Positions 7,217 to 49,883 of a stretch of DNA of 64,000 bases are shown here, piece after piece. Within the stretch, counting starts at the first letter, position 1; the number at the start of each line of letters is the position of its first letter. The notes beneath the pieces were generated by a model. The model was not told where the DNA came from and made no database searches. It saw nothing but the letters and a program-made list of their open reading frames with translations. The position numbers were made by a program, and so were the translations under genes. The DNA is taken from IMG/VR virus record IMGVR_UViG_3300042868_007959, positions 1 to 64,000 of that record. One strand, 5' to 3'.

Positions 7217-7822
7217 TTAATTATTATATTTTAGTGTGAAAAAATCTCTACCATTTAAATATATTTCATGGTGATCCAATAAAGATCCATCACTTATCAG
7301 TCGTTCATAATCTTTTGTGGGTACGATAGACATTTTACTATTGTAAATTAAAATATTTTCTTTAAATCCATCTTCTATAAAATATTCAAATTCTGATATT
7401 TTTTCGAATTCACTTTCATATGTTTCTTGATCGTCACCAGTGATAATTGCGAAATTAAAGTTTTTATCGCTTAAAGGTAATGTTTCCTTTATAACATCCT
7501 TTCTTTTATACATTTTTTCCCAAACATTAAAGGCATCACCCCTAATATCTCCATCTCTAGAAATCATCAACCCATTAGGGTGGCAAAACATTAAAGCCAC
7601 TTCTAATACTGTAGGACCAAATCCTTTTTCTGCCGCAATCATTGGAAAATAATAGGTACCATCTTTATTTCTAGATAATCCTACAAATCCTAAAATTTCA
7701 CCGTTAACAAAGTCATACAATGATATATTCATATCATCATATATGGAAATTATAATATTTCTAGGTAGAGATGACATTTTTTTGTATTCTTCTTTTAATA
7801 TTCTCCGTATTATTTCTTTCAT
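7217..7822 (-). CDS. Leader + putative GNAT-fold protein
   Basis: IAAEKGFGPTVLEVAL (acetyl-CoA-loop-like), DAFNVWEK; leader MKEIIRRILKE. Confidence 0.45.
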   Translation of the reverse strand: MKEIIRRILKEEYKKMSSLPRNIIISIYDDMNISLYDFVNGEILGFVGLSRNKDGTYYFPMIAAEKGFGPTVLEVALMFCHPNGLMISRDGDIRGDAFNVWEKMYKRKDVIKETLPLSDKNFNFAIITGDDQETYESEFEKISEFEYFIEDGFKENILIYNSKMSIVPTKDYERLISDGSLLDHHEIYLNGRDFFTLKYNN

Positions 7823-12104: not shown

Positions 12105-13445
12105 TCAATGATATATAGGATCTCGTACACCCCATTCATTTATTAGTATTTGATTTATTTCATTAATATAATCTTCCCACACACTATATGATTCGTCTTT
12201 AGTTAATCCATAAGTGTCACTACAATAGTTAAAGAAATCCTCCCTATCGAAATGCATAATTCTACTATATACTAAATGAGTAAAAGGGACGAAGATATTT
12301 ATCCAATCCGATGGCCACATACGATGAGGTTCTATTTGTGTATCATTTACAATAAATTCTAAAACTTTATCTAAATAATTTTTTCTCCTATCATTAGATT
12401 CTTTTATTAACCTATCCCTTTTAGGAAATTTATCAAACATAATCTTACTATATTTTTCCCACACAACATCAAACTCTTCTGAAGTTGTACCATAATGTTT
12501 ATTACAGTAATCTGAAAATTCATTATAAAATACTTCATTCGGTGATAATAAGGACATAAATGAAGAATAAAAATTTATCGATGGGTATACTATCATTTGT
12601 AATTTAGGGACAATACTTGTATCACCAATTAAAGATTCTACAACCTTATCTAAAAATCTATTATTAGTTTCTACCGATTCATTAAGACTATTATCTTCCA
12701 TTTTATCCTCTAATTCTTTTTTTAATTTGGTGAATAATATTTTTATATACCTATTAAAAATTTCTAATATTAGAGATGTATCGGTTATTCCATACTGATT
12801 ACTTATGTAATTTACTTCTACATCATTTAATGGATAGTCTCCCATAAAATTTAAATGATAATCTGCCCCATTCCAATCCTCAGTATATATCTCACCATCA
12901 CCATAAAATGGATATACAATTCTCGCCACAGGTTCGTCTTTAATTGTTTTAATCTTATATTGAGTATCTTCTAACATAAAATTAACAATCTTATCTATAA
13001 CCATATTTTCTTTATCCCCTACAGATTCATTAAGACTATTTTCACTATAATCATCTGAATACCCTTCAGAGTTTTCATAATATATTGCCATACTCTTATC
13101 ATTATATTCGTATTTTTCCCAGTACCCATCACTCTCTTCATAATATATCATATTCCCCATTTCATCGTAATCTCTTAATGTCCACGGACCATTATCCCAC
13201 TCAACGTATAAAGGAAGTTTAGGTGGGTTAGTAGGGATATTAATAGATATAATTGTTGCCTCACTATTTATATTTCTATCTATTTCTAAAGAATTTTTAT
13301 CTTTATTAAAAAGTAATGAAAATACATCTAACCATTTATCGGTAGGTATTTTGAACATCCTTAAGTCCTCAATATAAGGGGGTTTCATAACACTTACTAC
13401 CTTTTGGGAGTAATTATCATCATTTATAGATTCATTAATTTTCAT
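12105..13445 (-). CDS. Four-module polyprotein with minimal leader MKINE
   Basis: LNESVGDK, LNESVETN and IKESNDRR junctions. Confidence 0.8.
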   Translation of the reverse strand: MKINESINDDNYSQKVVSVMKPPYIEDLRMFKIPTDKWLDVFSLLFNKDKNSLEIDRNINSEATIISINIPTNPPKLPLYVEWDNGPWTLRDYDEMGNMIYYEESDGYWEKYEYNDKSMAIYYENSEGYSDDYSENSLNESVGDKENMVIDKIVNFMLEDTQYKIKTIKDEPVARIVYPFYGDGEIYTEDWNGADYHLNFMGDYPLNDVEVNYISNQYGITDTSLILEIFNRYIKILFTKLKKELEDKMEDNSLNESVETNNRFLDKVVESLIGDTSIVPKLQMIVYPSINFYSSFMSLLSPNEVFYNEFSDYCNKHYGTTSEEFDVVWEKYSKIMFDKFPKRDRLIKESNDRRKNYLDKVLEFIVNDTQIEPHRMWPSDWINIFVPFTHLVYSRIMHFDREDFFNYCSDTYGLTKDESYSVWEDYINEINQILINEWGVRDPIYH

Positions 13446-14561: not shown

Positions 14562-15014
14562 TTACCACCAACTGAACCCACCGAATTTAGTGGCATTAAA
14601 ACCAAATTTTTTATTCAATATAGATACTAATTCAGATTCCCATAATTTAGTCTTATTAAAATAATTGTTTAAAGTCTCCATCATCTCTTCACTAATAACA
14701 ATCATATCAAAATTAGTGTCCATAGCATATGTAATATCAGGTCTTTCGTAACAAGGTTCTGGTAGTTCATCGGAAAGTTCTTTAGGGTAATTACCATCCC
14801 CCCTATATCCTTTCCTCACAAGTTTAAAAATATAATCATCATGATTATCAGATTCAGGTAATACAAAACCAATTGCGTAAGGATCACAACAAATCCCCAT
14901 ACCACAGTTGTATTCCGCCCAATCCATCCATGAATCAGTTAAATTAGGGTATTCAATATCTAGTACTCTCTCTATAGTACTAATCATTTTACTTTCTGTT
15001 ATAATAATTTTCAT
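14562..15014 (-). CDS. Hypothetical protein with leader MKIIITE
   Basis: ORF track. Confidence 0.8.
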   Translation of the reverse strand: MKIIITESKMISTIERVLDIEYPNLTDSWMDWAEYNCGMGICCDPYAIGFVLPESDNHDDYIFKLVRKGYRGDGNYPKELSDELPEPCYERPDITYAMDTNFDMIVISEEMMETLNNYFNKTKLWESELVSILNKKFGFNATKFGGFSWW

Positions 15015-15337
15015 TTGTTAAAAATTTCAAGGTATAAATCTATTATGTATTGTCCATACCAATTCCAAATTTTATTTGATGTATCAAAATCCAATCCGTA
15101 ATGTCTATCCATAATCGTATAAAAACATTCAGGTACCAACTCAAAAAACGGATTATACCTTGAATGGTTTAAATGTATAGATATGTTACAATCAAATAAA
15201 TACCAATGGTATCCTTTTAGTTCTGTATTGGTTATTATGTCATTTATGACATAATCATTAAATCTTTTATTATCACTTATATTTACAGATTCATTAATAA
15301 GTCTTTTGAATTGATTTTCTGTTATAATAATCTTCAT
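15011..15337 (-). CDS. Leader + single module (MKIIITENQFKRLINE|SV)
   Basis: Start moved to ATG 15337; module motifs present. Confidence 0.8.
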   Translation of the reverse strand: MKIIITENQFKRLINESVNISDNKRFNDYVINDIITNTELKGYHWYLFDCNISIHLNHSRYNPFFELVPECFYTIMDRHYGLDFDTSNKIWNWYGQYIIDLYLEIFNK

Positions 15338-15651
15338 TTTAAAAATCCCCAATCTTGTATTTCATATAATTTTTGCATATATAGTTTCCAAACAATAAGA
15401 CACTCCTGTCCAGTAAGACCATAGGTGTCCTTACAATAATGATCAAAATAAATTAACTGAGAATCTAATCCACTATATACGGTGTTGTCTAATAAACCAA
15501 ATGTATGTTTAAAAACTGATCTAAATCCTGTTCTACCTGCAGTACTTCTACCATTACCTATATAATAAGGTGGATTAAACCAAGTATTACCTATTTCGGT
15601 ATCATCCACAAGGTACTCCACAATCTTATTTAAATATATCTCTTTATCCAT
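15334..15651 (-). CDS. Single leaderless module (YLNKIVEYLVDDT...YCKDTYGL..VWKLY)
   Basis: Full module consensus. Confidence 0.8.
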   Translation of the reverse strand: MDKEIYLNKIVEYLVDDTEIGNTWFNPPYYIGNGRSTAGRTGFRSVFKHTFGLLDNTVYSGLDSQLIYFDHYCKDTYGLTGQECLIVWKLYMQKLYEIQDWGFLK

Positions 15652-15658
15652 AACAGTC

Positions 15659-15982
15659 TTAAAGTTTTTTCATGTCTACTCCACCAGCACTACCCTCAGT
15701 TTTGGAACTTCTTGCAAAACCAATTACTGAAGTTACATTTTCTTTAGATAAAGTTTTCTCCACACCATTTTTACTTTTCACAATACATCCACCGTCACTT
15801 GTTTTGGAGATATCCGCAACATTTATATCCATATAATATTTGGAGAATCTAATTATAGTAGTTCTATCATCAGTACTTACAGAAACAGTTCCGTCATTAT
15901 TTACTTTAAATGTTGCACCATATAAAACGAAATTTTCGTTAATAAGTCTTTTGAATTGATTTTCCGATATAATAATTTTCAT
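15659..15982 (-). CDS. Hypothetical protein with leader MKIIISENQFKRLINE
   Basis: Leader DNA 43/47 identical to that of 15011..15337. Confidence 0.8.
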   Translation of the reverse strand: MKIIISENQFKRLINENFVLYGATFKVNNDGTVSVSTDDRTTIIRFSKYYMDINVADISKTSDGGCIVKSKNGVEKTLSKENVTSVIGFARSSKTEGSAGGVDMKKL

Positions 15983-16005: not shown

Positions 16006-16830
16006 TCACTTAAGTAAGTTATAGTACTCTTTGAAGTGTTTTATTCTATCAGGTAAACCAATTGTACCCCCATTTACTCTTTTTGTGACTGCGGTTACTG
16101 TTGAATCGTCCGCACCTTTGTCACAGATACTCCATAACTTATTAGAATCAAAAAAGAACGCCGCAGATGCCAATGGATACTTAGTCGCAACCAAATCAGG
16201 GTTAGAAACACAATCTTCACCGATAAATTTGGTAAAATTAGTGTAATTTGACTTACCAGTTAACTGAATATACCCTCTACCTCTAAATTTAAACCCTTCT
16301 TTGGTAGTTTCGTCACCATTACCCATTCTACTTGCGTAAACACGAGCCGCAATCTTCTCAGGTTGACGTGCATATGACTCATTTAAGTTACCTGGAAAGT
16401 ATTTACCAAATATTTTCTTCAAACCGTCCGCAGAATAGTTTAAATTCTCTGAAACTGCCTTAAAACCACCTGATTCGTGACCACATTGAGCTAAAAAGTG
16501 AGCTAAACGTAAGTTATTTGTAATATTAAACTTTTTTGCAGTCTCAGGAATCTGTGCAATGACAGAATCAGGTATATGACCCTTTAATTTTTCAATATTT
16601 AATGACCCACCTGAAGGAATTACAACATCTTCTTTTATTATTACGGTTGACCCAAACATTTTTAACCATGTTCCGTCACCAACAACACCATCTGAGGTTA
16701 ATCCATTAGCCGATTGCCATTCTTTTACCGCTTTTTCTGTTCCGGGTCCGAATGATCCATCCGCAGTAAGACCTAATTTTGTTTGGAGTTTTTTTACGTC
16801 TTCTCCTTTAGACCCATTTTTTAATAACAT
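16006..16830 (-). CDS. Endolysin: PG-binding domain + glycoside hydrolase family 19
   Basis: RLAHFLAQCGHESGGF, FRGRGYIQLTGKSNY, VTKRVNGGTIGLPDR. Confidence 0.93.
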   Translation of the reverse strand: MLLKNGSKGEDVKKLQTKLGLTADGSFGPGTEKAVKEWQSANGLTSDGVVGDGTWLKMFGSTVIIKEDVVIPSGGSLNIEKLKGHIPDSVIAQIPETAKKFNITNNLRLAHFLAQCGHESGGFKAVSENLNYSADGLKKIFGKYFPGNLNESYARQPEKIAARVYASRMGNGDETTKEGFKFRGRGYIQLTGKSNYTNFTKFIGEDCVSNPDLVATKYPLASAAFFFDSNKLWSICDKGADDSTVTAVTKRVNGGTIGLPDRIKHFKEYYNLLK

Positions 16831-16896
16831 AACCTTTAATTTTATAATAAATATTCTAAAAATATTTTAAATCTTTTTTTAGTGAATATATGTAAT

Positions 16897-16924
16897 AAAA
16901 AAAACCCAGTATTTTAACTGGGTT
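16897..16924 (-). terminator. Intrinsic terminator between the TCS operon and the endolysin
   Basis: AACCCAGT-N6-ACTGGGTT plus U-tract. Confidence 0.75.
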
Positions 16925-16952
16925 CTTATTTTAATTAAATATTCTCATCTTC

Positions 16953-17435
16953 TTAGTTTATTTCACCATCTACCGATGATTCTTCTGTAGGGTACTCCTC
17001 AACAACCAAAGGAGTTTCTTCTTTAACTTGTGTATCTACAACAGTTGATCCTTGTGGTGGTCTTGGTGTTGTCGGATATTCCGCAACATTAGAAAAACTA
17101 TTTCCGTCTTCCTCATCAACTTTCTGAATTAACATCTTATCTCTGTCTTCAGAGTTGAACCAATAATCAACAACTTTATTAAGATTACCTACGAAGGCCC
17201 CGAATAAAATTAACAACATTTCTTTCCAGTTTTCTGCAATTTCAATTTGAAACATAACTGCCATATTAATACCAAAAATAATGAAGAAAAACAAGAATAA
17301 AATAATCCCTGTAATCTTCCATCTATTAGATTGCATTTGTTGCAACATATAATAGAAACGATTTTTATCCTCCACTTTAACATAAGGAGTTTCCCCGAAT
17401 AACATTTTTTTTAATCTACTTACCATTTTTTTCAT
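16953..17435 (-). CDS. Two-TM membrane protein, holin-like
   Basis: Two hydrophobic helices; LFGAFVGNLNKVVDYWFNS resembles phage holin motifs; next to the endolysin. Confidence 0.5.
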   Translation of the reverse strand: MKKMVSRLKKMLFGETPYVKVEDKNRFYYMLQQMQSNRWKITGIILFLFFFIIFGINMAVMFQIEIAENWKEMLLILFGAFVGNLNKVVDYWFNSEDRDKMLIQKVDEEDGNSFSNVAEYPTTPRPPQGSTVVDTQVKEETPLVVEEYPTEESSVDGEIN

Positions 17436-17443
17436 TTTTTTTA

Positions 17444-18124
17444 TTATTTATCTTTGTTAGGACTTGCACCATATTTTACCCCAAGTATTGTCCCCACTAT
17501 ACTGAAACTATTTGTTAACAGAATACCAAACATATTACTCCAAGTGGATCCAATAATCTCAGTATCCTTTCCTATTGTCATAGAATAAACATATATTCCC
17601 GTTGTGACACACCCAACACCTATAATTACATAAAGTGCAACCTTAACAATATTATTAATCAACTCAAACTGAGTTTTCTTTTGAACTATATCTAAATTGT
17701 TTTCTGCCTCATTTTTAGCATTTTCTGCAACGACTCTTGCCTGTTCAGATTGTTTCATAGCCTCAATCAGTTCGGCACTTATTTTTTCATTCTCTAGTTT
17801 CCATTCAAGAAGTTCAGAGTTTTGACTTTCAATCCGATTGTTTTGATCCTCCATACTGGTTAAAGTATTTTGGAGTTCCTCCACCATTCTTTGGTTTTCA
17901 TCGTTGAGTATAGTCAAATCTTTGTTCTGAACCTGAACCTGTTTGGTTACCTCCAAACGTTTACGTCTAGAATCTTTATCTTTATCCGTACATTTTTTTA
18001 AATAGTCTTTAAACAAATCGTTGTCCGATTCAAACAACTTAATAATGTTTCCTTCAAGTCCGATATTCTTGGACTCAAAGAGTTTAATTAAATTGTTTTC
18101 ACTATTTTTATCTAACTTTATCAT
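17444..18124 (-). CDS. Coiled-coil protein with two C-terminal TM helices
   Basis: Long heptad region then two hydrophobic segments; ATGA overlap with the receiver gene. Confidence 0.7.
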   Translation of the reverse strand: MIKLDKNSENNLIKLFESKNIGLEGNIIKLFESDNDLFKDYLKKCTDKDKDSRRKRLEVTKQVQVQNKDLTILNDENQRMVEELQNTLTSMEDQNNRIESQNSELLEWKLENEKISAELIEAMKQSEQARVVAENAKNEAENNLDIVQKKTQFELINNIVKVALYVIIGVGCVTTGIYVYSMTIGKDTEIIGSTWSNMFGILLTNSFSIVGTILGVKYGASPNKDK

Positions 18125-18558
18125 TTATATACTTTGAAAGGTAAGGTTCTATTTTTATAACCTTCATAATCTTTTCTGAACTCCTCTAAACGTGGCTCAA
18201 TGTCGTCAGATTTGATAATCCAAAACTGAGCTCCCGCTTGAACTGCCTTTGATTGTTCTTCTGGTTCGTTTGATGATGAAATAATTCCAACAACTACGTG
18301 ATTACCGTATTCAAAATTAATTTTTCTAATTAATTCTATACCATCAAAAGAACTACCAATGATGTTTAAATCAACAAACACACAATCAGGTTTATCATTA
18401 TCATCCCCACTTTTGAACCATTTTTCGAATTTTTTTGCCGCTTCGTCAGAACTATTTAACGCGTTTAAAGACAAACTTATGTCAAGTAACGAACAAGCGT
18501 CCTCAAATACTAAATGGAATAAATCCTCGTCATCCACCAATAAAATTGAATCAATCAT
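18121..18558 (-). CDS. Stand-alone response regulator receiver domain
   Basis: ILLVDDE, VFVDLNI (phospho-Asp), ISSS, IIKS; no output domain. Confidence 0.92.
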   Translation of the reverse strand: MIDSILLVDDEDLFHLVFEDACSLLDISLSLNALNSSDEAAKKFEKWFKSGDDNDKPDCVFVDLNIIGSSFDGIELIRKINFEYGNHVVVGIISSSNEPEEQSKAVQAGAQFWIIKSDDIEPRLEEFRKDYEGYKNRTLPFKVYK

Positions 18559-18570
18559 TTTTTTCTTTTT

Positions 18571-20169
18571 TTATTTTATTTTTATTTTCATTTTAGTTCC
18601 TATTTCATTTTTCTCACAAGTAATTTTAAACTTGTGTTCTTCCAAAATTGCAACGCAAATATTTAATCCCAAACCAGTACCTGATTCCTTTTGTCCTTCT
18701 TTTCTTGTATATGGTTTACATAGGTAATCAAAATCTTCTTGTGTTAACCCCCTACCATTATCTTGAATGTAAACAGTATTCTCATCAGAATATATTTTAA
18801 CAAACTTAGTGTCAGAATCATTGTACTTTAAACCATTCCTGATTAAGTTGTCAACTGCAGTACAGAATAACGCTTCGTTTACTTCTATTGTTGGTAAGTC
18901 CTCAATAATTACTTGACTACTATATGCGGTTGATGATAGGTAATCAGATAGTATCACTTTTAAATCGCATTCCGCCTTATTTAAAACAACATCTTTTTTA
19001 ACAAGATTTGTAAACTCATATACCCCTTTATACACTTTTTGTGAATGTTTAAGACCTTCCTTAATCATTCTAATTGGTGCCTCTATTTTTAAATCGGTAA
19101 TGTCTTCGGGTTTTAATCTTCTTTCTAAAGAACTTAATCCTCTTGGCATATATGTATTGATACCTGAGTGCATATCGTGTCTTAATATTTTAGCGGCATG
19201 TTCTAAATAAGTGTTCTTTTTTTCAATCTCTTTCTTTTGTTCGTGAGTAGTGGTGACATCTGTTGCAATTTTCATAACACGATAAATCTTACCATCCATA
19301 CCAATGATTGGATTATAGGTTGCTTGAAGATGTATTAAGGAACCATCCTTTTTAACTCTAGTGATTTCACCAGTAAATAATATACCATCATTTAATTTTT
19401 CCCAAAAAAGAGAATATTCCTCACTTTTTGAGTGGTCCTCATCTATAAAAATCCTATGGTGTTTCCCAACCACTTCATCCAGTGATGAATATCCCATAGT
19501 ATTTAAAAACAATTCATTAGCGAAAATTATATTCCCCTTCAAATCAAACTCAATAACAGCGTTGGATTTATTTATCGCGTTCATTCTATTACGAATTTCC
19601 ACTTCTTTTTTCTTAAGATCTGTAACATCTTGTCTAATTGATGAGAATCCCTCCAACTTACCGTGTTTGTCAAATTTTGCCTTGATGTAGGTATCGACAT
19701 AATATAGTTCACCTGATTTTCCTTTGTTGGTAACAACATCATTCCATATCTCACCTTTCATTACTTTTTCATACATTTTACCCCAATATCCATCAGGTTG
19801 TAATCCTGAGTTTACAATAACATGATCCTTACCTTTAACCTCATCTAAAGACCAACCTGAAACATCCTCAAACTTTTTATTAACGTATGTAATTTTACCG
19901 TATTTATCGGCAACAGAAACGATGGTTGCAGAATCAATAAAATCTTCACTATCTTTTATTTGTTTTAATAAACCATCTTTTAACTCTACGGTTTGGGATT
20001 TCATTAAAAAATAAAATAATGGAGAAAATAATAAAAAGCAAGATATCTCAATAATTTTTGTTATATCAGTGGATCCAATAATCCCCGATAAAACAAAAAT
20101 TTTAGTTAAAAGAAAAGTAACCATCAAGATTACAGAAGGTATTATTAATAATTTACGTTTTTTAATCAT
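18571..20169 (-). CDS. Membrane PAS-PAS sensor histidine kinase
   Basis: Two N-terminal TMs, two PAS/PAC domains, H-box LRHD, N-box NLIRNGLKY, DNGRG, GTGLGL. Confidence 0.93.
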   Translation of the reverse strand: MIKKRKLLIIPSVILMVTFLLTKIFVLSGIIGSTDITKIIEISCFLLFSPLFYFLMKSQTVELKDGLLKQIKDSEDFIDSATIVSVADKYGKITYVNKKFEDVSGWSLDEVKGKDHVIVNSGLQPDGYWGKMYEKVMKGEIWNDVVTNKGKSGELYYVDTYIKAKFDKHGKLEGFSSIRQDVTDLKKKEVEIRNRMNAINKSNAVIEFDLKGNIIFANELFLNTMGYSSLDEVVGKHHRIFIDEDHSKSEEYSLFWEKLNDGILFTGEITRVKKDGSLIHLQATYNPIIGMDGKIYRVMKIATDVTTTHEQKKEIEKKNTYLEHAAKILRHDMHSGINTYMPRGLSSLERRLKPEDITDLKIEAPIRMIKEGLKHSQKVYKGVYEFTNLVKKDVVLNKAECDLKVILSDYLSSTAYSSQVIIEDLPTIEVNEALFCTAVDNLIRNGLKYNDSDTKFVKIYSDENTVYIQDNGRGLTQEDFDYLCKPYTRKEGQKESGTGLGLNICVAILEEHKFKITCEKNEIGTKMKIKIK

Positions 20170-20173
20170 ACAA

Positions 20174-20231
20174 ATAAATATAGAAAAAATATTAAAAACT
20201 ATTTACTTTAATTAATTTTTTCATATTTATA
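20174..20231. promoter_or_regulatory. Divergent pair of putative late promoters (HK operon and L,D-transpeptidase-like gene)
   Basis: TATTTAT on minus at 20174-20181; ATATTTATA on plus at 20223-20231. Confidence 0.6.
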
Positions 20232-20245
20232 AAAAAATTAAAATT

Positions 20246-20842
20246 ATGAACTATACAAAAGAACAGGTTGAGGCTGCCGTAAAAGCCAAAGGTTATGTTT
20301 GGTTTGAGGACGCAAACAATAAAGGGTATGATGTAAACATTGTCGGTATTAGAAATTCAAGTACTGGACAAAAAGTGACTAACGTATTTGACGATTACAT
20401 AACATTATCTTACAAAGTTGATGGACAATGGAAATTCCATATTTGGCCAGCAACTACTGATCCAGGTACTAAAGGTGTTATGCAATTTGGTAACAAGGCA
20501 GGTGTCGCAAGATTAGTAGAGGGACAATACAGAGGGTCACATACAATGAGACTTCATGCTGGGAAATATGAAGCATTGGGTCAAAACAAACCAGTTAAAG
20601 TTTTCAGAGATCCTAATAAGAATATGGAATATGATGAAAATAAAATTCAAGAAGGTGTATTTGGAATTAATATACACAAAGCAGGTGCCGACTCAACTTA
20701 TGTTGAAAATTGGTCAGAAGGTTGTCAAGTGTTTAAAAAGTCAAAGGACTTTGAAGAATTTATGTCTATCTGTAGGAAAGCAAAAGGGGTACACGGTAAT
20801 TCATTTACCTATACACTAATCGAAACTAACGACATTAAATAA
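20246..20842 (+). CDS. L,D-transpeptidase (YkuD)-like catalytic protein
   Basis: GINIHKAG...WSEGCQV matches H-x(14-17)-S-x-G-C. Confidence 0.7.
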   Translation: MNYTKEQVEAAVKAKGYVWFEDANNKGYDVNIVGIRNSSTGQKVTNVFDDYITLSYKVDGQWKFHIWPATTDPGTKGVMQFGNKAGVARLVEGQYRGSHTMRLHAGKYEALGQNKPVKVFRDPNKNMEYDENKIQEGVFGINIHKAGADSTYVENWSEGCQVFKKSKDFEEFMSICRKAKGVHGNSFTYTLIETNDIK

Positions 20843-21013: not shown

Positions 21014-21397
21014 ATGAAAAGAACCATTAAAAGAATATTAAAGGAAGAACTAACCGAAACAGAATATATGGGCGGAATTATTCCCTCACATTTTTTAGAG
21101 GAACTGGGAATTAAATTATTTAAAGAAGAAGATGTTGCCAGTCTTACAGAAATACAATTCGATACAAAACGTGTTGTAATAGATCTTTTTACTCTTGACG
21201 GAGACGAAGGATATGGTAGTTATGAAGATGCGATGAGTATACCTGATGGTTTTCAATACCAATACGGTTTTAACATTAATGATTTACCTGTAAGTTTTAT
21301 AAAGTACTTAATAAAAGAACTGAATGATAACTATGGTACCAATTATTTGTACCCATTTTTAGATATAATACCAAAAGGTATGTTTAAGAACCTTTAA
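21014..21397 (+). CDS. Hypothetical protein with leader MKRTIKRILKE
   Basis: Plus-strand leader gene with TATTTAT at 21002-21008. Confidence 0.8.
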   Translation: MKRTIKRILKEELTETEYMGGIIPSHFLEELGIKLFKEEDVASLTEIQFDTKRVVIDLFTLDGDEGYGSYEDAMSIPDGFQYQYGFNINDLPVSFIKYLIKELNDNYGTNYLYPFLDIIPKGMFKNL

Positions 21398-23636
21398 TAT
21401 AAGAATCAAATTTATCTATAATGATATTTTTATATGTATCCCATACATATTTAATATCGTCATCAGTCAAACCATACATATCTTTAGTATAATTAGAAAA
21501 AGAAGCGGGATAATTAATACGAAAAAGTAAATTATAACTTAAAGAAGATAGACGGTAAAAAGGTGCGAAGAATATATCGTCATTAATCGAAACTTTAGTA
21601 TCAGCCACAAGAAATTCCACAATTTTATTTAGATATTCATCTTTTCTATCTACAGATTCATTAATTCTATCACCATTCTTTTTTAATAACATTTCTTCAT
21701 ATATAATAGTAGATAATTTTTGTATGTATCTATCATATAACTCTTGTACAGTATCTATATCACATATACTATAAGTGTTACAAATATAATCTATATCTTC
21801 TCCTTCATCTAAATTAAAACCACTACCATTTGACCAATCATAAATATCATATATACTATAATCATATGCATCCTCATCCACATCCTCATCAGGATTAGTA
21901 AAAGGGTACCATATTTCTACTTTAGTTTCTGAATGATCACTAAACCTATTAATGTAAATATTATATTCGGTATCGTCTATCATAAAATCTACAATCTTAT
22001 TTAGATAATCAGATTTTCTATCTACAGATTCATTTATATTATTACCTTTAACCCTTAACATATCATCGTATATTTTAGTGAATAATTTCTCAGTGTATTT
22101 TTTAAATATATCTTCTATGGTTTTTACACTACGTATATTGTACACATCCCACATATATTCAATCTCCACTCTATTAAGGATATATTCACTCGATTCCTTA
22201 ATAGTAGATACCTCATATATAGTATAAGGGAATCCAGAGTCTTGTGCAGAATAAGGATACCTTATATAGACAAAAATTTCTGTAGAATCGACATTATATT
22301 GGGAAATACTAAGTTCATATTCGGTATCGTCTACCATATAATCAGAAATCTTATCTATTAGATCATCCTTTCTATCCACTGATTCATTAATGGGGACTTT
22401 AAATATATTAAGGATATTTTTTTTATATTTACTCCACACCCCTTTTACTTCTGAATTAGTTAACCCATAACTATCTTTACAATAGTTAAAAAAGTTTCTT
22501 TTCAACATATCATCAGATATTTTTTTTAAGTAGACTGTAGAAAACCATATAGATGCAAACGATGGTTTAAAAATTCCAAAATCTCCTTCTCCCATAGATA
22601 TTTCCGTGTCATCTACAAGAAATCCCACAATCTTATCTAAATAATCAGATTTTCTATCCACAGATTCGTTAATGGTAGGTACACCATTAATGATAGAAAA
22701 CCCATTAATTTTAGGGGTTAAAACTTTAAGATATCTTTTCCATAATTTTCTTATTTCCTCATCATCTGTCAATCCATACGTGTCTTTACAATAGTTAAAA
22801 AAGTTTCTTACATAAGAATTACCAATAAGATATTTTAATTCTAAATGATCTGTCATAGGTATTAGACCATAGAAATGATTAAAAGTAGGTTTAGCGTGAC
22901 CAGTAGGATAAGGTGGATACCACACTTTATTCTTTTGATCCACCATAGTGTCATCCACAAGGTAATCTATAATTTTATCCATATATTCACCTTTAGAAAT
23001 TTTATCCACAGATTCATTAATATTATCCTTACCAAATACAATATCCCTCATAACATCCTTATATGTTTCCCATACATAAACAATACCCTCTTCTGAAGTA
23101 ATTCCAAACGACTCATCAATGTATTCCATAAAACCGTCTATAGGGATATATGTCTCAAAAAGAAGTCTGTGAAAAGGTGTGAAATTATTACTACCTTGTC
23201 TAAGTGATCTCTTATATGTAAAAGGAAAAAATATCATCCTATTTTCATAGTCTACTTTAGTATCATCTACAAGAAATCCCACAACCTTATCTAAATATCT
23301 TTTTTTATTATCCACAGATTCATTAATGGGTTTAAGATCATACATAATAGATTCTTTATTATATCTATCCTTAATAATGGTTTTATAGTTGTCCCATATA
23401 TATTTTGTCTCATCGTAATTTAAACCATATGTATCCCTACAAGTTATCTGAACATCTGAAGGCATACCCCACGAAAGTTTATTTTTTAAATCATCGATAA
23501 AACTAGGTAAAGGTTTACCATTCGGACCTATCGGAGAAAAAGGATATATTATAACACCCGTTTCATATCTAATTATAGTATCATCAACAAACCACTTAAG
23601 AATCTTATCTAAATATATTTTTTTATTATCTTCCAT
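21384..23636 (-). CDS. Seven-module polyprotein with six INE|SVD junctions
   Basis: Six INESVD motifs, each followed by (Y/L)(L/I/M)(D/N)K(I/V)..(F/Y)(L/M)(V/I).DT; start could be 23642. Confidence 0.9.
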   Translation of the reverse strand: MEDNKKIYLDKILKWFVDDTIIRYETGVIIYPFSPIGPNGKPLPSFIDDLKNKLSWGMPSDVQITCRDTYGLNYDETKYIWDNYKTIIKDRYNKESIMYDLKPINESVDNKKRYLDKVVGFLVDDTKVDYENRMIFFPFTYKRSLRQGSNNFTPFHRLLFETYIPIDGFMEYIDESFGITSEEGIVYVWETYKDVMRDIVFGKDNINESVDKISKGEYMDKIIDYLVDDTMVDQKNKVWYPPYPTGHAKPTFNHFYGLIPMTDHLELKYLIGNSYVRNFFNYCKDTYGLTDDEEIRKLWKRYLKVLTPKINGFSIINGVPTINESVDRKSDYLDKIVGFLVDDTEISMGEGDFGIFKPSFASIWFSTVYLKKISDDMLKRNFFNYCKDSYGLTNSEVKGVWSKYKKNILNIFKVPINESVDRKDDLIDKISDYMVDDTEYELSISQYNVDSTEIFVYIRYPYSAQDSGFPYTIYEVSTIKESSEYILNRVEIEYMWDVYNIRSVKTIEDIFKKYTEKLFTKIYDDMLRVKGNNINESVDRKSDYLNKIVDFMIDDTEYNIYINRFSDHSETKVEIWYPFTNPDEDVDEDAYDYSIYDIYDWSNGSGFNLDEGEDIDYICNTYSICDIDTVQELYDRYIQKLSTIIYEEMLLKKNGDRINESVDRKDEYLNKIVEFLVADTKVSINDDIFFAPFYRLSSLSYNLLFRINYPASFSNYTKDMYGLTDDDIKYVWDTYKNIIIDKFDSYIKGS

Positions 23637-23760
23637 ATCCATATTATAAATACCTTAATATTTGGAAACGTAAATTTTTCTGGAAAATTTTTAACCCTAT
23701 ATACCGTTCACCAGAAATGGGTGTTCATTGTCACTGAACAAACCTATGTATTGAACAATA

Positions 23761-26046: not shown

Positions 26047-27120
26047 CTAAAATAATCCACTATTTTTTATATAATGATGCCACACATATTGTATTTCTTC
26101 TATATGTAACCCATACATATTTTCACAATATATAGAAAACGCCCTGAAGGAATGTACTGGAAGATGTTGTTGTTTGTTAGGAGTAAGTAGGAGTATATTA
26201 CTAAAGTATGGATATTTAATTTCTCTCTCTTCATAATCTATAATAGTATCATCTATTATATACTGTACAATTTTATCTAAGTATATTTTTTTACTGTCTA
26301 CAGATTCATTCATTGGTTTGGAATTTATCTTATGATTAAATATAACTTTATATTGATCCCATACATATACTGATTCCTCATATGTTAATCCATATGTATC
26401 ATTACAATATTCAGAGAACGCATTAAATAATGGAGATTCAATTGTTGCGTAATATAATGGTGTTGATAAACCCCATTGGGAATTAATATAAGGAAGAAAA
26501 GGATATGTTACTAACTTTTGTTCATAGTCTAGTTCTGTATCATCGATTATATACTGTGATATATTGTCTAGATATTTTTCTTTTCTCTCTACAGATTCAT
26601 TAATAGATCCTTTATCGTCAACAATAGATTTATATTTTTCCCACACATATATAATTTCTTCACCTGTCAATCCATATATATCTTTACAATATTTAAGAAA
26701 AGAATAGTAGTAAGGAGAAGGTATTATAAAGGGTGGAATAATAGGAATGGGATTATATAGATATGGTAGTTTACATAGATTCTTATTGTAATCTATCTCT
26801 GTATCATCTATTATATACTGTACAATCTTATCTAGATATATTTCTTTATTGTCTACGGATTCATTGATAGATCCAGGAAGTTTAATCTTTCTATTAATTT
26901 GAAATAAAAGATTACCATAGACATATAAACAATCATCACTGTTTAAACCATAGTCAAACTCTAATATATCCCATACCGTACTGAAGAATCCATTTGAAAG
27001 AAACTCTACATCATAGGTTCTATTAGATCCATCTAATATCTCTACTGTAGAATGAAGATAATTTATTTTAATATCCTCTAACAAATACTCCACTATCTTA
27101 TTTAAATGTGTTTTATCCAT
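26047..27120 (-). CDS. Four-module polyprotein (INE|SV, MNE|SV)
   Basis: Three junctions, each followed by YLD(K/N)I.QYIIDDT. Confidence 0.85.
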   Translation of the reverse strand: MDKTHLNKIVEYLLEDIKINYLHSTVEILDGSNRTYDVEFLSNGFFSTVWDILEFDYGLNSDDCLYVYGNLLFQINRKIKLPGSINESVDNKEIYLDKIVQYIIDDTEIDYNKNLCKLPYLYNPIPIIPPFIIPSPYYYSFLKYCKDIYGLTGEEIIYVWEKYKSIVDDKGSINESVERKEKYLDNISQYIIDDTELDYEQKLVTYPFLPYINSQWGLSTPLYYATIESPLFNAFSEYCNDTYGLTYEESVYVWDQYKVIFNHKINSKPMNESVDSKKIYLDKIVQYIIDDTIIDYEEREIKYPYFSNILLLTPNKQQHLPVHSFRAFSIYCENMYGLHIEEIQYVWHHYIKNSGLF

Positions 27121-38956: not shown

Positions 38957-39250
38957 TTATTTACAAATCGTACTTTGTATTGCTGACCACCAAGTATCTG
39001 ACTCATCAACCTCTGAATCACCAGTCATTCCGTACTCATCTAATTCACTTCTAATTTCGATTGTAGCTTCTTTCCACATCCTCAAAGGCTTCTTTATTTC
39101 ATCCCACGATTCAGGATTTTCTTTTCTATTTCCTAAATGATTTTCTAATAATTTCATTCCCTCTTCATATGTGTCGACACTCATTATATTACAAATGTCT
39201 TTCTTTTTATTAGTTTCTTCCTTTAATATTTTTCTAATTATAGATTTCAT
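38957..39250 (-). CDS. Hypothetical protein with leader MKSIIRKILKE
   Basis: ORF track. Confidence 0.8.
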   Translation of the reverse strand: MKSIIRKILKEETNKKKDICNIMSVDTYEEGMKLLENHLGNRKENPESWDEIKKPLRMWKEATIEIRSELDEYGMTGDSEVDESDTWWSAIQSTICK

Positions 39251-39255
39251 ATTAC

Positions 39256-39786
39256 TTATCTTTTACTGATGATATCCTTAAGTTTTTCTAATGAAACTTT
39301 TAATATCTCACCTTGTTCTCTTGGTCTTAATTGACTCATTTGTTTTGCAGTTGATATCGAATACCTACTATCATTTTCGAACCACTGCCCATCTTTAAAA
39401 ACAAAAATAGGGTACCAATTATATGAATATACTACGTATGACCTATTTTCATATTGGGAATGGGTATTACTACCTTTAAATGGTACCTTAGCCATAACTA
39501 AATCTCTACCTGTTTTATTACTAGTAGCAACTCTTTTTTTAGTTATATCAGTTCTCACCAACTCATCGTACTCATCTTTGAAGTAATTGTCTTTAAATAA
39601 CTGATAAAGTTCAAATGCGTCTACACCTGAAAACCCGAAGTTTTTATTAATAAAAGCAATAACCTTACTGTATGGGGTATCTACTCCAAACCCCTCAGAT
39701 TTTAATGTCTTGATAATATATTTTTCTAATTTTTCTTTTCTATTATCAACCTCTTCTTTTAATATTTTTTTGATAGTATTTTTCAT
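39256..39786 (-). CDS. Hypothetical protein with leader MKNTIKKILKE
   Basis: ORF track; TATTTATA at 39790-39798. Confidence 0.8.
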   Translation of the reverse strand: MKNTIKKILKEEVDNRKEKLEKYIIKTLKSEGFGVDTPYSKVIAFINKNFGFSGVDAFELYQLFKDNYFKDEYDELVRTDITKKRVATSNKTGRDLVMAKVPFKGSNTHSQYENRSYVVYSYNWYPIFVFKDGQWFENDSRYSISTAKQMSQLRPREQGEILKVSLEKLKDIISKR

Positions 39787-39870: not shown

Positions 39871-40041
39871 TTAGGATTTTTTAACTTTATCAATGTATGA
39901 CCATATAAAACCTACTGCAGTCATTAATCCACCTGTAATTTCAGTTACTAAAGCTTCGTCAAAATAACCTAACATAACTACTGCACCACCAATTGCGGTT
40001 AGTGAATGTCTAATTAAACCTAAAATTTGTTCTTTACTCAT
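39871..40041 (-). CDS. Small two-TM protein, putative holin (56 aa)
   Basis: Manual translation MSKEQILGLIRHSLTAIGGAVVMLG...GFIWSYIDK; TATTTATA at 40072-40080 and a terminator after it. Confidence 0.65.
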   Translation of the reverse strand: MSKEQILGLIRHSLTAIGGAVVMLGYFDEALVTEITGGLMTAVGFIWSYIDKVKKS

Positions 40042-40369: not shown

Positions 40370-40504
40370 TTATTTTTTAGAAACTTTTTCTATTTTTTTA
40401 TAATGTGTTTTACCATAGGCATCACAATCAGCCTTTTTAGTAGTTTTACAACTAATTACAATCGTTAAAGTAACGATTAATAAGTAAACTATTTTACGAT
40501 TCAT
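40370..40504 (-). CDS. Small putative lipoprotein (44 aa)
   Basis: Manual translation MNRKIVYLLIVTLTIVISCKTTKKADCDAYG...; overlaps the sigma stop. Confidence 0.6.
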   Translation of the reverse strand: MNRKIVYLLIVTLTIVISCKTTKKADCDAYGKTHYKKIEKVSKK

Positions 40505-41021
40505 ATACTTTGTTTTTTAATTTTTTTATTATATTATTTTTAGCTCTATGGAGATTTGATTTAGATGTACCTTCATGTATATTTAATCTATCCGATATTT
40601 CTTTATGTGTTAAATCCTCATAGTAATACATAAGTATTGCAGTTTTATGTGATGCGGGTAATGTATCTAAAACTAAACTTATATCATTTAATTTTTCTTC
40701 ATTATTATTATCATCTTCTTCAACAGGTGAATCTACATTGTCACAATACTCGATAGGGTACTTTTTTTTCCTTAAAAAATCTATAGACATATTCTTAAAA
40801 ATTCTGTAGATCCAACCATCAAAACTACCTTTACCGTCATACTTATCAATACAACTATAAAGTTTTATGAAACCATTTTGTAGTATGTCTTCCGCATCCA
40901 TATCATTTTTTATATACCTCTTTACTGTAGTATACGCAATTTTCCTATAACATCGATACATTTCTGATTGTGAAATTTTATCACCCCTTAAACAACCTTC
41001 GATTACCTCATTTAAATCCAT
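40494..41021 (-). CDS. ECF RNA polymerase sigma factor, Bacteroidota type
   Basis: DAEDILQNGFIK, SFDGWIYRI..N..IDFLRK (region 2); LP..AILMYYYEDLTHKEIS..EGTSKSNLHRAK (region 4). Confidence 0.92.
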   Translation of the reverse strand: MDLNEVIEGCLRGDKISQSEMYRCYRKIAYTTVKRYIKNDMDAEDILQNGFIKLYSCIDKYDGKGSFDGWIYRIFKNMSIDFLRKKKYPIEYCDNVDSPVEEDDNNNEEKLNDISLVLDTLPASHKTAILMYYYEDLTHKEISDRLNIHEGTSKSNLHRAKNNIIKKLKNKVYES

Positions 41022-41077: not shown

Positions 41078-43072
41078 TTAATTAATTATTTTTCTAATTG
41101 TCCCGTCATCGTAAATTTCTAACAATAAACCTTTAGTTTGTTGATCAACTTCCTGACCTAATAAATTTATATATTTAACAATTTTTTTATCTTTGATTTG
41201 TTTAGATACACTTATTGGTCCATATATTTTAAATTGCCCATCTATATCATATTGGTTTAATCTATAATAAGTTAACTCATTTAAGTTATAATCAATAAAA
41301 GAATATTTTATTTCTGTGTTACTATTATATGCTGCTTCTTTAATTGAGATGGTTTCCCAAAAAACCCCATCTAAACTCATTTCCAAATCAAAGTAACTAG
41401 AATTATGTTCAGATGCAGTTGCCCACTTTATCACATTATATTGTTGGTATGGGTACCCCTCAAATTCAATTAGTTCTACAGGTAATGATATAGGGTTAGA
41501 TATTCTTATAGTATACTCCTCAATTTCACCATATCCATACCCAGTTGAGTAGTAGGCATCCACGTTTGGAGTTGAATTCCAAACTGAAAGGACTCTCATA
41601 AGGACATCTCCTGTTGTCGCATCTAAGGGGATTGTTATTGATTGTGATGTTGAATTTGCAGTTGGTTTTAACAAAACATTCTCAGATGTCTGAAACGTAC
41701 CGTCACCATTCCAATCAATCCAAGCACCATAACCTTGACCTGGTGGTACTGTATTTGACGCAGTAACAGATAAATTATAAGGTTCACCTTTTGTGACATT
41801 CCCAATAATTGAGGTGAAATCAGAATAAGCATCACCATCATTAGTAGTTGTGTTATTAATGTCACTAATAGTCACATTAGTAATATGATCACCATCAGCA
41901 ATTCCTGATGAATATGGAGGTGCACTTTTTAATGTTATATTTACAATATTTGACACACCAGAAGGGCAAGTACCGTCTTTAGATGTTGTTCTAACATAAA
42001 CGTTTGGTTGTTGTATATTTAATTGGATGTTAAAGGGGTTAGTTGGGGTAACGAATGTATTACTAACCGTACCAAAATTATTGTAAGAGAATTCAATTTT
42101 TGTAATTGTTCCACCATTACCTGTAGTAGTTAAAGAAACGGCATCATTCACTGTTGTTAAAATTTTATCTGAACTTAATGTTCCTCCATTTGTCGGAGTC
42201 GTACAAACTGTTACTGATGTTACTGTTGCCTGAAACCCAGACCTAATACCTAAACCATCTGAAGTAAATCTTAAAGTTAGTTGACCTAAAGAGTTTTCCG
42301 CAGTAATGCTTGTCGGTAATGATGTACCATTTAATGTGGTCAATAAAGTAGAACTTGTATTTGGTCCGTCATAGACATACAGATAATCCCAACCTGACTC
42401 TAGATTAAATGATGAAAAATTTAATTGTAATTTTTTTGTATTATCTGATGGTGTTAAAGTTACTGTTTGGTCTAAACTATTGGCGTAATTATCTGTTGTC
42501 CCACCCCTATCTGTTATGGTATATGTTAATGTGGATGTTAGAGTTTGACTACAATTTGACTCAAAAGGGATAATAGTATTAGAATTACTATTCGAAGACG
42601 TAACACCAAAATCATCTAAATACCATACATTCATTCCTGACGCTCTCGTATCCCTTATTCGAATATAGACATTTACTAAATTTAAAATAGTTAAATCAAT
42701 TGTCCTTTTATTATATGTTGCGGTAGGATTGGCGGAATATGTATTACGAGTTGTCCAGTTTGTATTATCAGTAGATGTTTCCACTACAAAATTGTGTGTC
42801 GCGGAAGTACCACTTCTTCTTATCCAAAAAGTCACTACTGACGGATTTGATATTATGGGTGTCCTTATGAAATCTCCTTGACCATTAAATGATAAATTAT
42901 TATTACCAGTTCTTACTGATGCCGTACTATATCCTATTGATGATTGATCCCAAGTTCCTCCCTGAGTTGGTAATGATCCATTAAAACTTTCATAAATTAA
43001 ATATTGACTACATTGTGTGATACCCAAAAAAGAAATTAGGGTAAATAGTGAGATTAATATTATTCTTTTCAT
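41078..43072 (-). CDS. Secreted surface protein: signal peptide + CUB + GEVED + LPVEL Ig-like + T9SS-CTD-like tail
   Basis: LESGWDYLYVYDGP (CUB); AWIDWNGDGTF..GEIEEY (GEVED); LPVELIEF..YYRLNQYDIDG; NLLGQEV..IYDDGTIRKII. Confidence 0.8.
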   Translation of the reverse strand: MKRIILISLFTLISFLGITQCSQYLIYESFNGSLPTQGGTWDQSSIGYSTASVRTGNNNLSFNGQGDFIRTPIISNPSVVTFWIRRSGTSATHNFVVETSTDNTNWTTRNTYSANPTATYNKRTIDLTILNLVNVYIRIRDTRASGMNVWYLDDFGVTSSNSNSNTIIPFESNCSQTLTSTLTYTITDRGGTTDNYANSLDQTVTLTPSDNTKKLQLNFSSFNLESGWDYLYVYDGPNTSSTLLTTLNGTSLPTSITAENSLGQLTLRFTSDGLGIRSGFQATVTSVTVCTTPTNGGTLSSDKILTTVNDAVSLTTTGNGGTITKIEFSYNNFGTVSNTFVTPTNPFNIQLNIQQPNVYVRTTSKDGTCPSGVSNIVNITLKSAPPYSSGIADGDHITNVTISDINNTTTNDGDAYSDFTSIIGNVTKGEPYNLSVTASNTVPPGQGYGAWIDWNGDGTFQTSENVLLKPTANSTSQSITIPLDATTGDVLMRVLSVWNSTPNVDAYYSTGYGYGEIEEYTIRISNPISLPVELIEFEGYPYQQYNVIKWATASEHNSSYFDLEMSLDGVFWETISIKEAAYNSNTEIKYSFIDYNLNELTYYRLNQYDIDGQFKIYGPISVSKQIKDKKIVKYINLLGQEVDQQTKGLLLEIYDDGTIRKIIN

Positions 43073-49838: not shown

Positions 49839-49883
49839 CATTTTAATCTTTTTTTTTAATATTTATTGTATATTATTATTTAT

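Follow-up and report, generated by a model that had tools for sequence, protein, structure and literature searches.

Does a large uncultured phage that carries its own two-component signalling system use it to decide when the host is lysed? The question is raised by a cluster on the minus strand of a 64,000-nucleotide stretch (hereafter the window) of a 254-kb IMG/VR phage contig, in which a histidine kinase, a stand-alone receiver and two predicted membrane proteins are followed by an endolysin gene. The initial annotation, made from the sequence alone, had described this arrangement and had proposed phosphorylation-controlled lysis timing, in which the receiver binds a cytoplasmic coiled coil and gates a holin according to the energy state of the host. 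In our analysis every feature of the described arrangement was found to be present, whereas the proposed interpretation was supported only in part. No description was found in the literature.

We first examined the signalling genes. The kinase gene (20169-18571, minus strand, 532 aa) encodes two N-terminal hydrophobic segments, two PAS domains and a HATPase_c domain (Pfam, E 2.4e-14; NCBIfam). PAS1 belongs by sequence to the flavin-type MmoS/Aer/NifL subgroup (PDB sequence hits: 3ewk (MmoS), E 5e-23; 8dik (Aer), E 2e-16; 2gj3 (NifL), E 2e-8), and the NifL model of NCBIfam also matches this region; flavin binding itself is inferred. The motifs DNLIRNGLKYND, QDNGRG and GTGLGLN of the N, G1 and G2 boxes are invariant in 39 homologues, as is the motif LRHDMHSGINTY, which lies where the H box is expected; the region around the latter aligns with the HK853 and CpxA chains, although the Pfam HisKA model did not reach E 0.01. 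The receiver gene (18558-18121, minus strand, 145 aa) has Response_reg as its only domain (Pfam), with no output domain, and D9, D10, D63, S94 and K116 are invariant in 72 distinct sequences (mean column identity, 87%). Both proteins thus look functional as judged from the sequence.

The receiver gene is followed by a gene whose ATG overlaps the receiver's TGA as ATGA, and whose product of 226 aa (18124-17444, minus strand) is referred to here as CC226. It consists of a conserved N-terminal module (LEGNI, RRKRLEITKQ), a coiled-coil stalk of about 150 residues that varies and carries indels, and a near-invariant two-helix membrane hairpin (residues 135-226; 17447-17722, minus strand), of which TM2 reads WSNMFGILLTNSFSIVGTILGVKY. 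In the alignment, TM1 and TM2 each have a conserved polar or small face (G171/T174/T175/Y178, and T204/N205/S208/G211/T212/G215). In the AlphaFold model (mean pLDDT, 83), one helix spans residues 36-184 and is followed by a turn and a helix at 189-219; the membrane segments here and below were predicted from hydropathy and from the AlphaFold model only. CC226 matches no Pfam, PHROG or NCBIfam family, and a Foldseek search with its model found only an uncharacterised relative, so that membership of a described holin or antiholin family was not found by sequence or by fold.

Downstream of CC226 lies the gene for a small membrane protein of 160 aa, TM160 (17435-16953, minus strand), with one or two hydrophobic segments and an acidic and proline-rich tail, and then an intrinsic-terminator-like hairpin (16927-16900, minus strand; 11-pair stem followed by a T run). 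TM160 is encoded directly upstream of the endolysin, as a holin may be, but no Pfam hit and only a weak hit to a PHROG of unknown function were obtained, and no homology was detected by profile comparison to the tm87 or tm102 families (tm102 is an unrelated small membrane protein that occupies the same position in another lineage); it is regarded as a lineage-specific holin candidate. The endolysin (16830-16006, minus strand) carries PG_binding_1 and Glyco_hydro_19 (Pfam), matches PHROG 181 'endolysin' (E 2e-66) and is 68-71% identical to genes in two GenBank huge-phage genomes. A recognised holin gene (Phage_holin_10, Pam3 gp28 family; 39871-40041, minus strand; 56.6 bits against a Pfam cut-off of 27) lies 23 kb away in the window; in related loci its homologue sits directly after the GH19 endolysin.

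The gene divergent from the kinase (20246-20842, plus strand), called LDT198 here, had been described as L,D-transpeptidase-like, which is plausible but only weakly supported. No match to the YkuD sequence family was found (no Pfam, NCBIfam or PDB sequence hit). The protein matches phrog_3000 and, weakly, the endolysin family phrog_33083 (E 5e-10), in relatives it is fused to PG_binding_1, and an H144...S157-x-G159-C160 motif, which may correspond to the H...(S/T)xGC arrangement of a catalytic His and Cys, is invariant in the alignment. The only notable PDB hit of its model (pLDDT 82) was the LD-carboxypeptidase Pgp2 (6xj6), at E 0.02 and TM 0.40 (probability, 0.94). We treat it as a gene for a probable cell-wall enzyme.

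The motif TATTTAT, which the initial annotation had noted in all three transcription units, is indeed present upstream of each. The divergent intergenic region (20170-20245) contains two ATATTTAT elements (20174-20180 on the minus strand and 20224-20230 on the plus strand), both of which are invariant in an alignment of 9 loci, and the endolysin gene has its own element at 16847-16853. However, the motif is not specific to these units: it is the most enriched 7-mer upstream of genes across the whole window (26 of 102 genes, 8.9-fold), although window-wide it is not over-represented (68 found against 86 expected). It is thus a generic upstream element.

We next asked whether the arrangement recurs, and whether it occurs in phages or in host chromosomes, a survey that had been set beforehand as a test of the idea. 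The kinase, receiver and CC226 genes occur together in 87 distinct, non-identical related phage loci, more than would be expected from chance, and the receiver gene is translationally coupled to CC226, the two genes overlapping by 4 or 1 nt in 77 of 81 loci. The CC226 and TM160 families are 96-100% viral in the ESM Atlas, and a scan of 185,579 species genomes found only 8 MAG contigs, from discordant phyla and probably mis-binned. The system is therefore phage-borne; a Bacteroidota host is no more than plausible. TM160, by contrast, is present in only 25 of the 87 loci.

The key new result is that the C-terminal hairpin of CC226 is a portable module. It is 51% identical (E 6e-31) to the C-terminus of PAS-PAS fusion proteins of other phages, which were verified and have 281 relatives in IMG/VR, and a profile search found the module only at C-termini, behind the LEGNI module or behind PAS (including flavin-type PAS), PAS-PAS or GAF domains, in the fusions with no kinase or receiver. 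In fusion-type loci a peptidoglycan hydrolase lies within two genes in 45 of 52 loci, and a small membrane protein is immediately adjacent in 39 of 52. In two-component-type loci with enough flanking sequence, a hydrolase lies within 4 kb in 39 of 59 loci and within 500 bp in 21 of 59, and about a third (20 of 59) have none within 4 kb. Five hydrolase classes (GH19, GH24, M15, LDT198-like and Amidase_2) are found beside the module, as are the recognised holins Phage_holin_4_1 and Phage_holin_10, and in one locus (L248) a complete cassette is seen in the order GAF-hairpin, a holin-like protein, spanin-like proteins and GH19. The linkage is conserved across rearrangements, although the loci are from related phages and the counts are not independent events.

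Taken together, we consider it more likely than not that this is a phage-encoded signalling module that controls a membrane effector of the lysis cassette, the conserved output being CC226's own membrane hairpin and not TM160. What the analysis establishes is the presence of a membrane-anchored PAS-PAS kinase and a single-domain receiver with intact catalytic and phospho-acceptor residues as read from the sequence, the coupling of the receiver gene to CC226, the three-part build of CC226, the fusion of its hairpin through a coiled coil to PAS, PAS-PAS or GAF domains in other phages, and the position of both the fused and the split versions beside endolysins and holins; the link to lysis is in this sense well supported by context. 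The pathway itself, including phosphotransfer, sensing of the energy state of the host, binding of the receiver to the coiled-coil protein and any hole formation or its inhibition, is inferred. In this view, a cytoplasmic signal would be read by the PAS domains and would set the activity of the kinase, the phosphorylated receiver would dock on the N-terminal module of CC226, and the change would travel down the stalk, alter the state of the hairpin in the inner membrane and shift the time of lysis. Whether the signal speeds or delays lysis also remains inference. We tentatively prefer a hairpin that acts as a regulated membrane-permeabilising unit, like a pinholin, whose opening depolarises the membrane and so triggers whichever holin the phage carries, which would explain why one invariant hairpin travels with many unrelated holins and endolysins; that the hairpin delays lysis, as an antiholin does, is possible but less likely. 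The proposal rests on no experiment, no protein of the proposed pathway matches a characterised holin or antiholin family, two loci carry a CC226-type gene with no receiver, kinase or lysis gene nearby, and in the window a terminator and a separate promoter-like element lie between the operon and the endolysin.

Among the other explanations, the one that survives best, although we consider it unlikely, is that the module is a host-takeover or superinfection-control device unrelated to lysis, in which the hairpin would act on a conserved host membrane protein or on membrane energetics, for example to block respiration, transport, motility or the entry of a second phage, and its position would be inherited gene order. 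The near invariance of TM2 beside diverse holin-like proteins fits a conserved host target, and the two-component-type loci without a nearby hydrolase and the orphan CC226-type genes away from lysis genes are in agreement with it. However, the linkage persists through many rearrangements and through replacement of the endolysin by four other enzyme classes, it is tightest in the simpler fusion forms, and the distant GAF-fused and flavin-PAS-fused forms again head lysis cassettes.

It is more doubtful that CC226 is an input partner, that is, an accessory membrane protein that controls the kinase as LiaF does for LiaS, with the receiver acting on an unknown target or as a phosphate sink. The kinase has no periplasmic sensor domain and has two membrane segments joined by a very short loop, the layout of intramembrane-sensing kinases, and the receiver is more conserved than either partner, which fits several binding partners. 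On the other hand, in the fusion proteins the hairpin follows PAS or GAF domains with no kinase present, so it does not need a kinase to act on, it is the receiver gene and not the kinase gene that overlaps CC226, and the membrane segments are the least conserved part of the kinase. Equally doubtful is the exact model of the initial annotation, in which CC226 gates TM160 as the holin for the GH19 endolysin: although the gene order in the window (CC226, TM160, terminator, endolysin) and the unrelated small membrane proteins at the same position in other lineages fit it, TM160 is missing from most loci, the endolysin follows CC226 directly in many of them, TM160 matches no holin family, the window has a Phage_holin_10 gene elsewhere, and a single invariant hairpin is unlikely to bind several unrelated holins specifically.

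The proposed module was compared with described systems. In T4 lysis inhibition, in which the antiholins RI and RIII act on holin T, a phage-encoded system likewise reads a signal and changes the time of holin-dependent lysis through protein-protein contacts at the membrane; however, none of the six proteins hits the PHROG or Pfam families of RI, RIII or T, T4 senses superinfection through a periplasmic domain, and here the sensors are cytoplasmic PAS or GAF domains or a His-Asp phosphorelay and the conserved element is a membrane hairpin on a long coiled coil. The bacterial LytSR system, which controls the holin-like and antiholin-like CidAB/LrgAB proteins, also links a two-component system to holin-like membrane proteins and cell lysis, but it is cellular and acts on transcription through a DNA-binding LytTR regulator, whereas here the system is phage-borne, the coupling is inferred to be direct protein contact, and the kinase has PAS domains and not the LytS membrane domain. 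Class II holins and pinholins (for example, phage 21 S21) share with the hairpin two membrane helices with both ends in the cytoplasm, polar or small residues along one helix face and a gene within the lysis cassette, but the hairpin matches no holin family in Pfam or PHROGs, carries a cytoplasmic extension of 135 to 280 residues (putative receiver-docking module, PAS or GAF) and has only a very short C-terminal tail. XhlA of the Bacillus PBSX-type cassette (xhlA-xhlB-xlyA) is a coiled-coil membrane protein encoded directly upstream of a holin and an endolysin, but no Pfam XhlA match was found, and XhlA is short, with a single C-terminal membrane segment and no known sensor input. VqmA of vibriophage VP882 is a phage-encoded PAS-domain sensor that ties the lysis decision to a chemical signal, but it is a soluble transcription factor that governs the switch from lysogeny to lysis, and here the PAS domains feed a kinase or are fused to a membrane hairpin inside the lysis cassette.

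Lysis timing sets phage fitness and burst size, and the known controls are holin-intrinsic clocks and a few antiholins. A dedicated sensory pathway feeding the lysis cassette, either a phosphorelay or a direct sensor fusion, would mean that phages adjust lysis to the physiological state of the host. In its furthest form, which we hold only tentatively, many large environmental phages may carry an 'inside-out' device in which cytoplasmic PAS or GAF sensors, or a full His-Asp phosphorelay with up to two kinases, gate a conserved pore-forming hairpin whose opening depolarises the cell and fires whichever holin the phage carries; lysis time would then be a regulated response to host redox, energy or ligand state rather than a fixed clock, and this would be a new class of lysis regulator and the first viral two-component system with a known output. 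The hairpin and its exchangeable sensors also form a compact natural example of cytoplasm-to-membrane signalling that is open to direct testing. The family is abundant, with 4,839 90%-identity clusters of CC226 in metagenomes and several hundred matching stretches on IMG/VR contigs (258 confirmed relatives of CC226 and the 281 of the fusion protein), many of them from freshwater lakes, and the effect on microbial turnover could therefore be broad.

The ORF listing and domain scans confirmed the gene order described in the initial annotation. On the minus strand, a histidine kinase (20169-18571, 532 aa) with two N-terminal hydrophobic segments joined by a very short loop, two PAS domains, a His-box region and HATPase_c is followed by a receiver (18558-18121, 145 aa; Response_reg only, no output domain), by CC226 (18124-17444, 226 aa), the ATG of which overlaps the TGA of the receiver gene as ATGA, and by TM160 (17435-16953, 160 aa; one or two hydrophobic segments and an acidic tail). 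Membrane segments were predicted from hydropathy. A terminator-like hairpin (16927-16900; 11-pair stem plus a T run) and the endolysin gene (16830-16006; PG_binding_1 plus GH19; PHROG 181, E 2e-66) come next. Divergent from the kinase gene, on the plus strand (20246-20842), a 198-aa protein is encoded that matches phrog_3000 and, more weakly, an endolysin PHROG. The motif TATTTAT, which the initial annotation had noted for the three transcription units, was found upstream of all three (16847-16853, 20174-20180 and 20224-20230). However, it is also the most enriched 7-mer upstream of genes throughout the window (26 of 102 genes, 8.9-fold), where it lies at two preferred distances from the start codon, although it is not over-represented in the window as a whole. 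The longer form ATATTTAT is invariant on both sides of the intergenic region between the kinase gene and the 198-aa gene in nine loci. Thus, a signal specific to these units was rejected, and the motif is probably a general promoter-like element of this phage. A sigma-70 promoter scan found no more sites than were found in shuffled sequence.

The window is part of the IMG/VR contig UViG_3300042868_007959 (253,879 bp). The G+C content is about 28-30% throughout, no tRNA genes were found in the window, and most of the large ORFs are unannotatable. Large proteins built from repeats that each contain an INESV motif (21384-23642, 12105-13445 and 26047-27120; 6, 3 and 2 copies, respectively) match no known family. 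An N-terminal motif of the form (I/L)(K/R)(K/R)(I/L)(L/I)(K/N)(E/S) is shared by 7 of 102 ORFs within their first 30 residues (1476-2057, 7217-7822, 15011-15352, 15659-15982, 21014-21397, 38957-39250 and 39256-39786) and occurs in none of 501 internal 30-residue windows; it may be a targeting or packaging tag, or mark a paralogous N-terminal domain. Auxiliary genes encode an IMP dehydrogenase/GMP reductase family enzyme (44700-45809; Pfam E 6e-109), a protein with an RNA-repair-type HAD domain and a polynucleotide-kinase-like region (49866-51698), and a 664-aa secreted protein with CUB and GEVED domains (41078-43072).

The endolysin is 68-71% identical to genes in two GenBank huge-phage genomes (635 kb and 462 kb), which have no kinase, receiver or CC226 within 12 kb of it. 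In the search of GenBank phages, only distant PAS or kinase matches were found with the kinase, and nothing with CC226. The CC226 and TM160 families are 96-100% viral in the ESM Atlas, and CC226 has 4,839 relatives at 90% clustering, all metagenomic, on contigs up to about 300 kb. When one genome from each of 185,579 bacterial and archaeal species was scanned, only eight MAG contigs carried the module (assigned to Verrucomicrobia, Bdellovibrionota, Gemmatimonadota, Saccharibacteria, Ignavibacteria, Saprospira, Flavobacteriales and Alphaproteobacteria). The longer ones that we inspected carry the same phage-like neighbours, and we read these as probable phage contigs mis-binned into bacterial genomes. 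Thus, the observation that had been proposed beforehand as a refutation, namely that the operon is common in host chromosomes, was not made. As for the host, only hints of Bacteroidota were obtained: weak DNA matches to Bacteroides and Cellulophaga phages, an ECF sigma factor with a sub-threshold hit to a Bacteroidota subfamily, and some mis-binned contigs labelled Flavobacteriales or Saprospira.

Searches with tblastn and ORF clustering over 159 IMG/VR loci (with ORFs called by a simple script) gave 87 loci with non-identical receiver-CC226 DNA, all of which contain CC226 by construction. The receiver gene lies immediately upstream wherever upstream sequence exists, except in two orphan loci (L154, 3150-3806; L159, 5574-6230), in which a CC226-type gene with the LEGNI module (see below) has no receiver, kinase or lysis gene nearby. 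The kinase gene lies upstream of the receiver gene. The receiver and CC226 genes overlap by 4 nt in 48 loci and by 1 nt in 29, out of 81. The receiver is the most conserved of the three proteins (87% mean column identity), and D9, D10, D63, S94 and K116 are invariant in 72 distinct sequences. In the kinase, the His-box region and the N, G1 and G2 boxes are invariant, while the membrane segments and PAS domains vary. Both proteins therefore look catalytically competent from their sequences. PAS1 belongs to the flavin-type PAS group, its best solved relatives being MmoS PAS-A (E 5e-23), Aer and NifL. In about 20 of these loci (for example L056, 9584-11544; also L034, L041, L062, L086 and others), two more genes sit between the kinase and receiver genes, one for a secreted 205-aa protein and the other for a second histidine kinase with a signal peptide, a periplasmic region, one membrane segment and HATPase_c. 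Some lineages therefore appear to feed two inputs into one receiver. A DnaK (Hsp70) homologue lies a few genes from the module in about 20 related phage loci (for example L021, 11552-13411, and L128, 11694-13559).

The alignment of 50 CC226 homologues showed a conserved N-terminal module (K-N-I-x-LEGNI-x-K-L-I-D and then RRKRLEITKQIQxQN; the LEGNI module), a poorly conserved central stretch with indels, and a near-invariant C-terminal part, in which TM2 reads WSNMFGILLTNAFSIVGTIMGVKY in the consensus. Both predicted membrane helices have a conserved stripe of polar or small residues (G171, T174, T175 and Y178 on TM1; T204, N205, S208, G211, T212 and G215 on TM2). In the AlphaFold model (pLDDT 83), two short N-terminal helices are followed by one continuous helix from residue 36 to 184, which runs into the first membrane segment, a turn, and a second helix at 189-219. 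The protein has no signal peptide, and the N-terminus and stalk are therefore presumably cytoplasmic. Pfam, PHROGs and NCBIfam gave nothing for CC226 (a V_ATPase_I hit is below threshold and reflects the coiled coil) and nothing useful for TM160. A Foldseek search of the CC226 model against BFVD and PDB returned one uncharacterised relative and otherwise nothing significant, and no described family or solved structure resembles the protein.

The decisive result was comparative. Among the MAG contigs, and then in IMG/VR, we found proteins of about 370 aa with two PAS domains followed by a coiled coil and the same hairpin. Their PAS domains are 53% and about 45% identical to PAS2 of the kinase, their hairpin region is 51% identical to CC226 residues 113-219 (E 6e-31), and they have 281 relatives in IMG/VR. 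A profile of the hairpin searched against 1.84 billion representative proteins found 115 representatives. In the complete proteins the hairpin is C-terminal and sits behind the LEGNI module, one PAS domain, two PAS domains, a flavin-type PAS domain (L249, 4445-5353, two genes upstream of an Amidase_2 gene) or a GAF domain (L248, 5843-6925). The sensor-fused forms lack the LEGNI module and have no receiver gene upstream. The hairpin thus behaves as an exchangeable output domain coupled through a coiled coil to cytoplasmic sensors. In the lineage of the window, in this view, the sensor would have been replaced by a putative receiver-docking module served by a phosphorelay, and for this reason we take CC226 to be the output of the relay rather than an input.

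The link to lysis was examined by gene context. Of 52 fusion-type loci with distinct proteins and at least two genes on each side, 45 have a peptidoglycan hydrolase within two genes, and in 39 of those 52 a small membrane protein is immediately adjacent (in 29 it belongs to the tm87 family). By distance, 24 of 31 fusion-type loci with at least 4 kb on both sides have a hydrolase within 500 bp. Of 59 two-component-type loci with at least 4 kb on both sides, 39 have a hydrolase within 4 kb and 21 have one within 500 bp. The hydrolases belong to five classes (GH19, GH24, peptidase M15, the domain like that of the 198-aa protein, often fused to PG_binding_1, and Amidase_2), and lie upstream or downstream, on either strand. 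Recognised holins (Phage_holin_4_1 and Phage_holin_10) sit in the same clusters. The GAF-hairpin locus L248 reads as a textbook lysis cassette with spanin-like genes: GAF-hairpin, a tm87-type two-helix protein, a membrane-anchored coiled-coil protein, a lipoprotein, GH19 and a glucosaminidase. In the 64-kb window, the only two cell-wall-enzyme genes are those flanking the operon; by our estimate, a random gene in a 250-kb genome with two or three such genes would lie within 500 bp of one about 2% of the time. The loci are related, so the counts overstate independent events, but the variety of arrangements and enzyme classes nevertheless argues for selection on linkage. The second observation proposed beforehand as a refutation, namely that linkage to the endolysin is not conserved, was therefore not made either, although the linkage is not universal. 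The flanking 198-aa protein is itself found fused to PG_binding_1 and sits next to GH24 in many cassettes. H144, S157, G159 and C160 are invariant, and its model (pLDDT 82) has the LD-carboxypeptidase Pgp2 as its only notable PDB hit (E 0.02, TM 0.40). A cell-wall role is likely, while the YkuD-type fold, in line with the L,D-transpeptidase-like assignment made initially, is suggested but not shown.

The interpretation in the initial annotation, that the receiver binds the coiled coil and gates TM160 as the holin, was supported only in part. One invariant hairpin accompanies at least four unrelated holin-like families, and specific binding to a particular holin is therefore less likely than a generic action on the membrane. 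Holins of all described families fire when the membrane is depolarised. We therefore favour a regulated permeabilising hairpin that acts as a trigger, although an antiholin-like delay cannot be excluded. What we observed is the gene order, the residue conservation, the domain fusions and the proximity to lysis genes; phosphotransfer, flavin binding, docking of the receiver on CC226, the signal, the action of the hairpin on the membrane and the direction of its effect on lysis are inferred, and all functional statements rest on sequence, gene context and one predicted structure. TM160 as the holin is less well placed, since it is lineage-specific (25 of 87 loci), matches no holin family, and showed no homology in profile-profile comparison with tm87 or tm102, the small membrane proteins that occupy similar positions elsewhere. 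Moreover, the window has a clear Phage_holin_10 gene (39871-40041, minus strand; Pam3 gp28 family, 56.6 bits) 23 kb from the endolysin gene, close to a gene for a phage-encoded ECF-type sigma-70 factor (40494-41021, minus strand), and in related loci the homologue of that holin gene sits directly after the endolysin gene. The possibility that CC226 is a phosphotransfer (Hpt) protein was rejected, because it contains no histidine.

Functionally, the nearest systems are T4 lysis inhibition, in which RI and RIII act on holin T, holin/antiholin pairs in general, the bacterial LytSR system that controls CidAB/LrgAB, the XhlA-XhlB-XlyA cassette, which resembles it in layout, and VqmA of VP882, which resembles it in concept. 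None of these is homologous. Full-text searches of about 8.4 million papers and preprints for phage-encoded kinases, receivers or two-component systems, and for PAS domains with antiholins or lysis cassettes, found no description of a phage-encoded two-component system, or of PAS or GAF sensors in lysis cassettes. Regulators of lysis timing are already known, and we place the present system among them; none of the systems compared uses a His-Asp relay or a sensor-fused membrane hairpin inside the lysis cassette, and the proposed regulator is widespread and directly testable.
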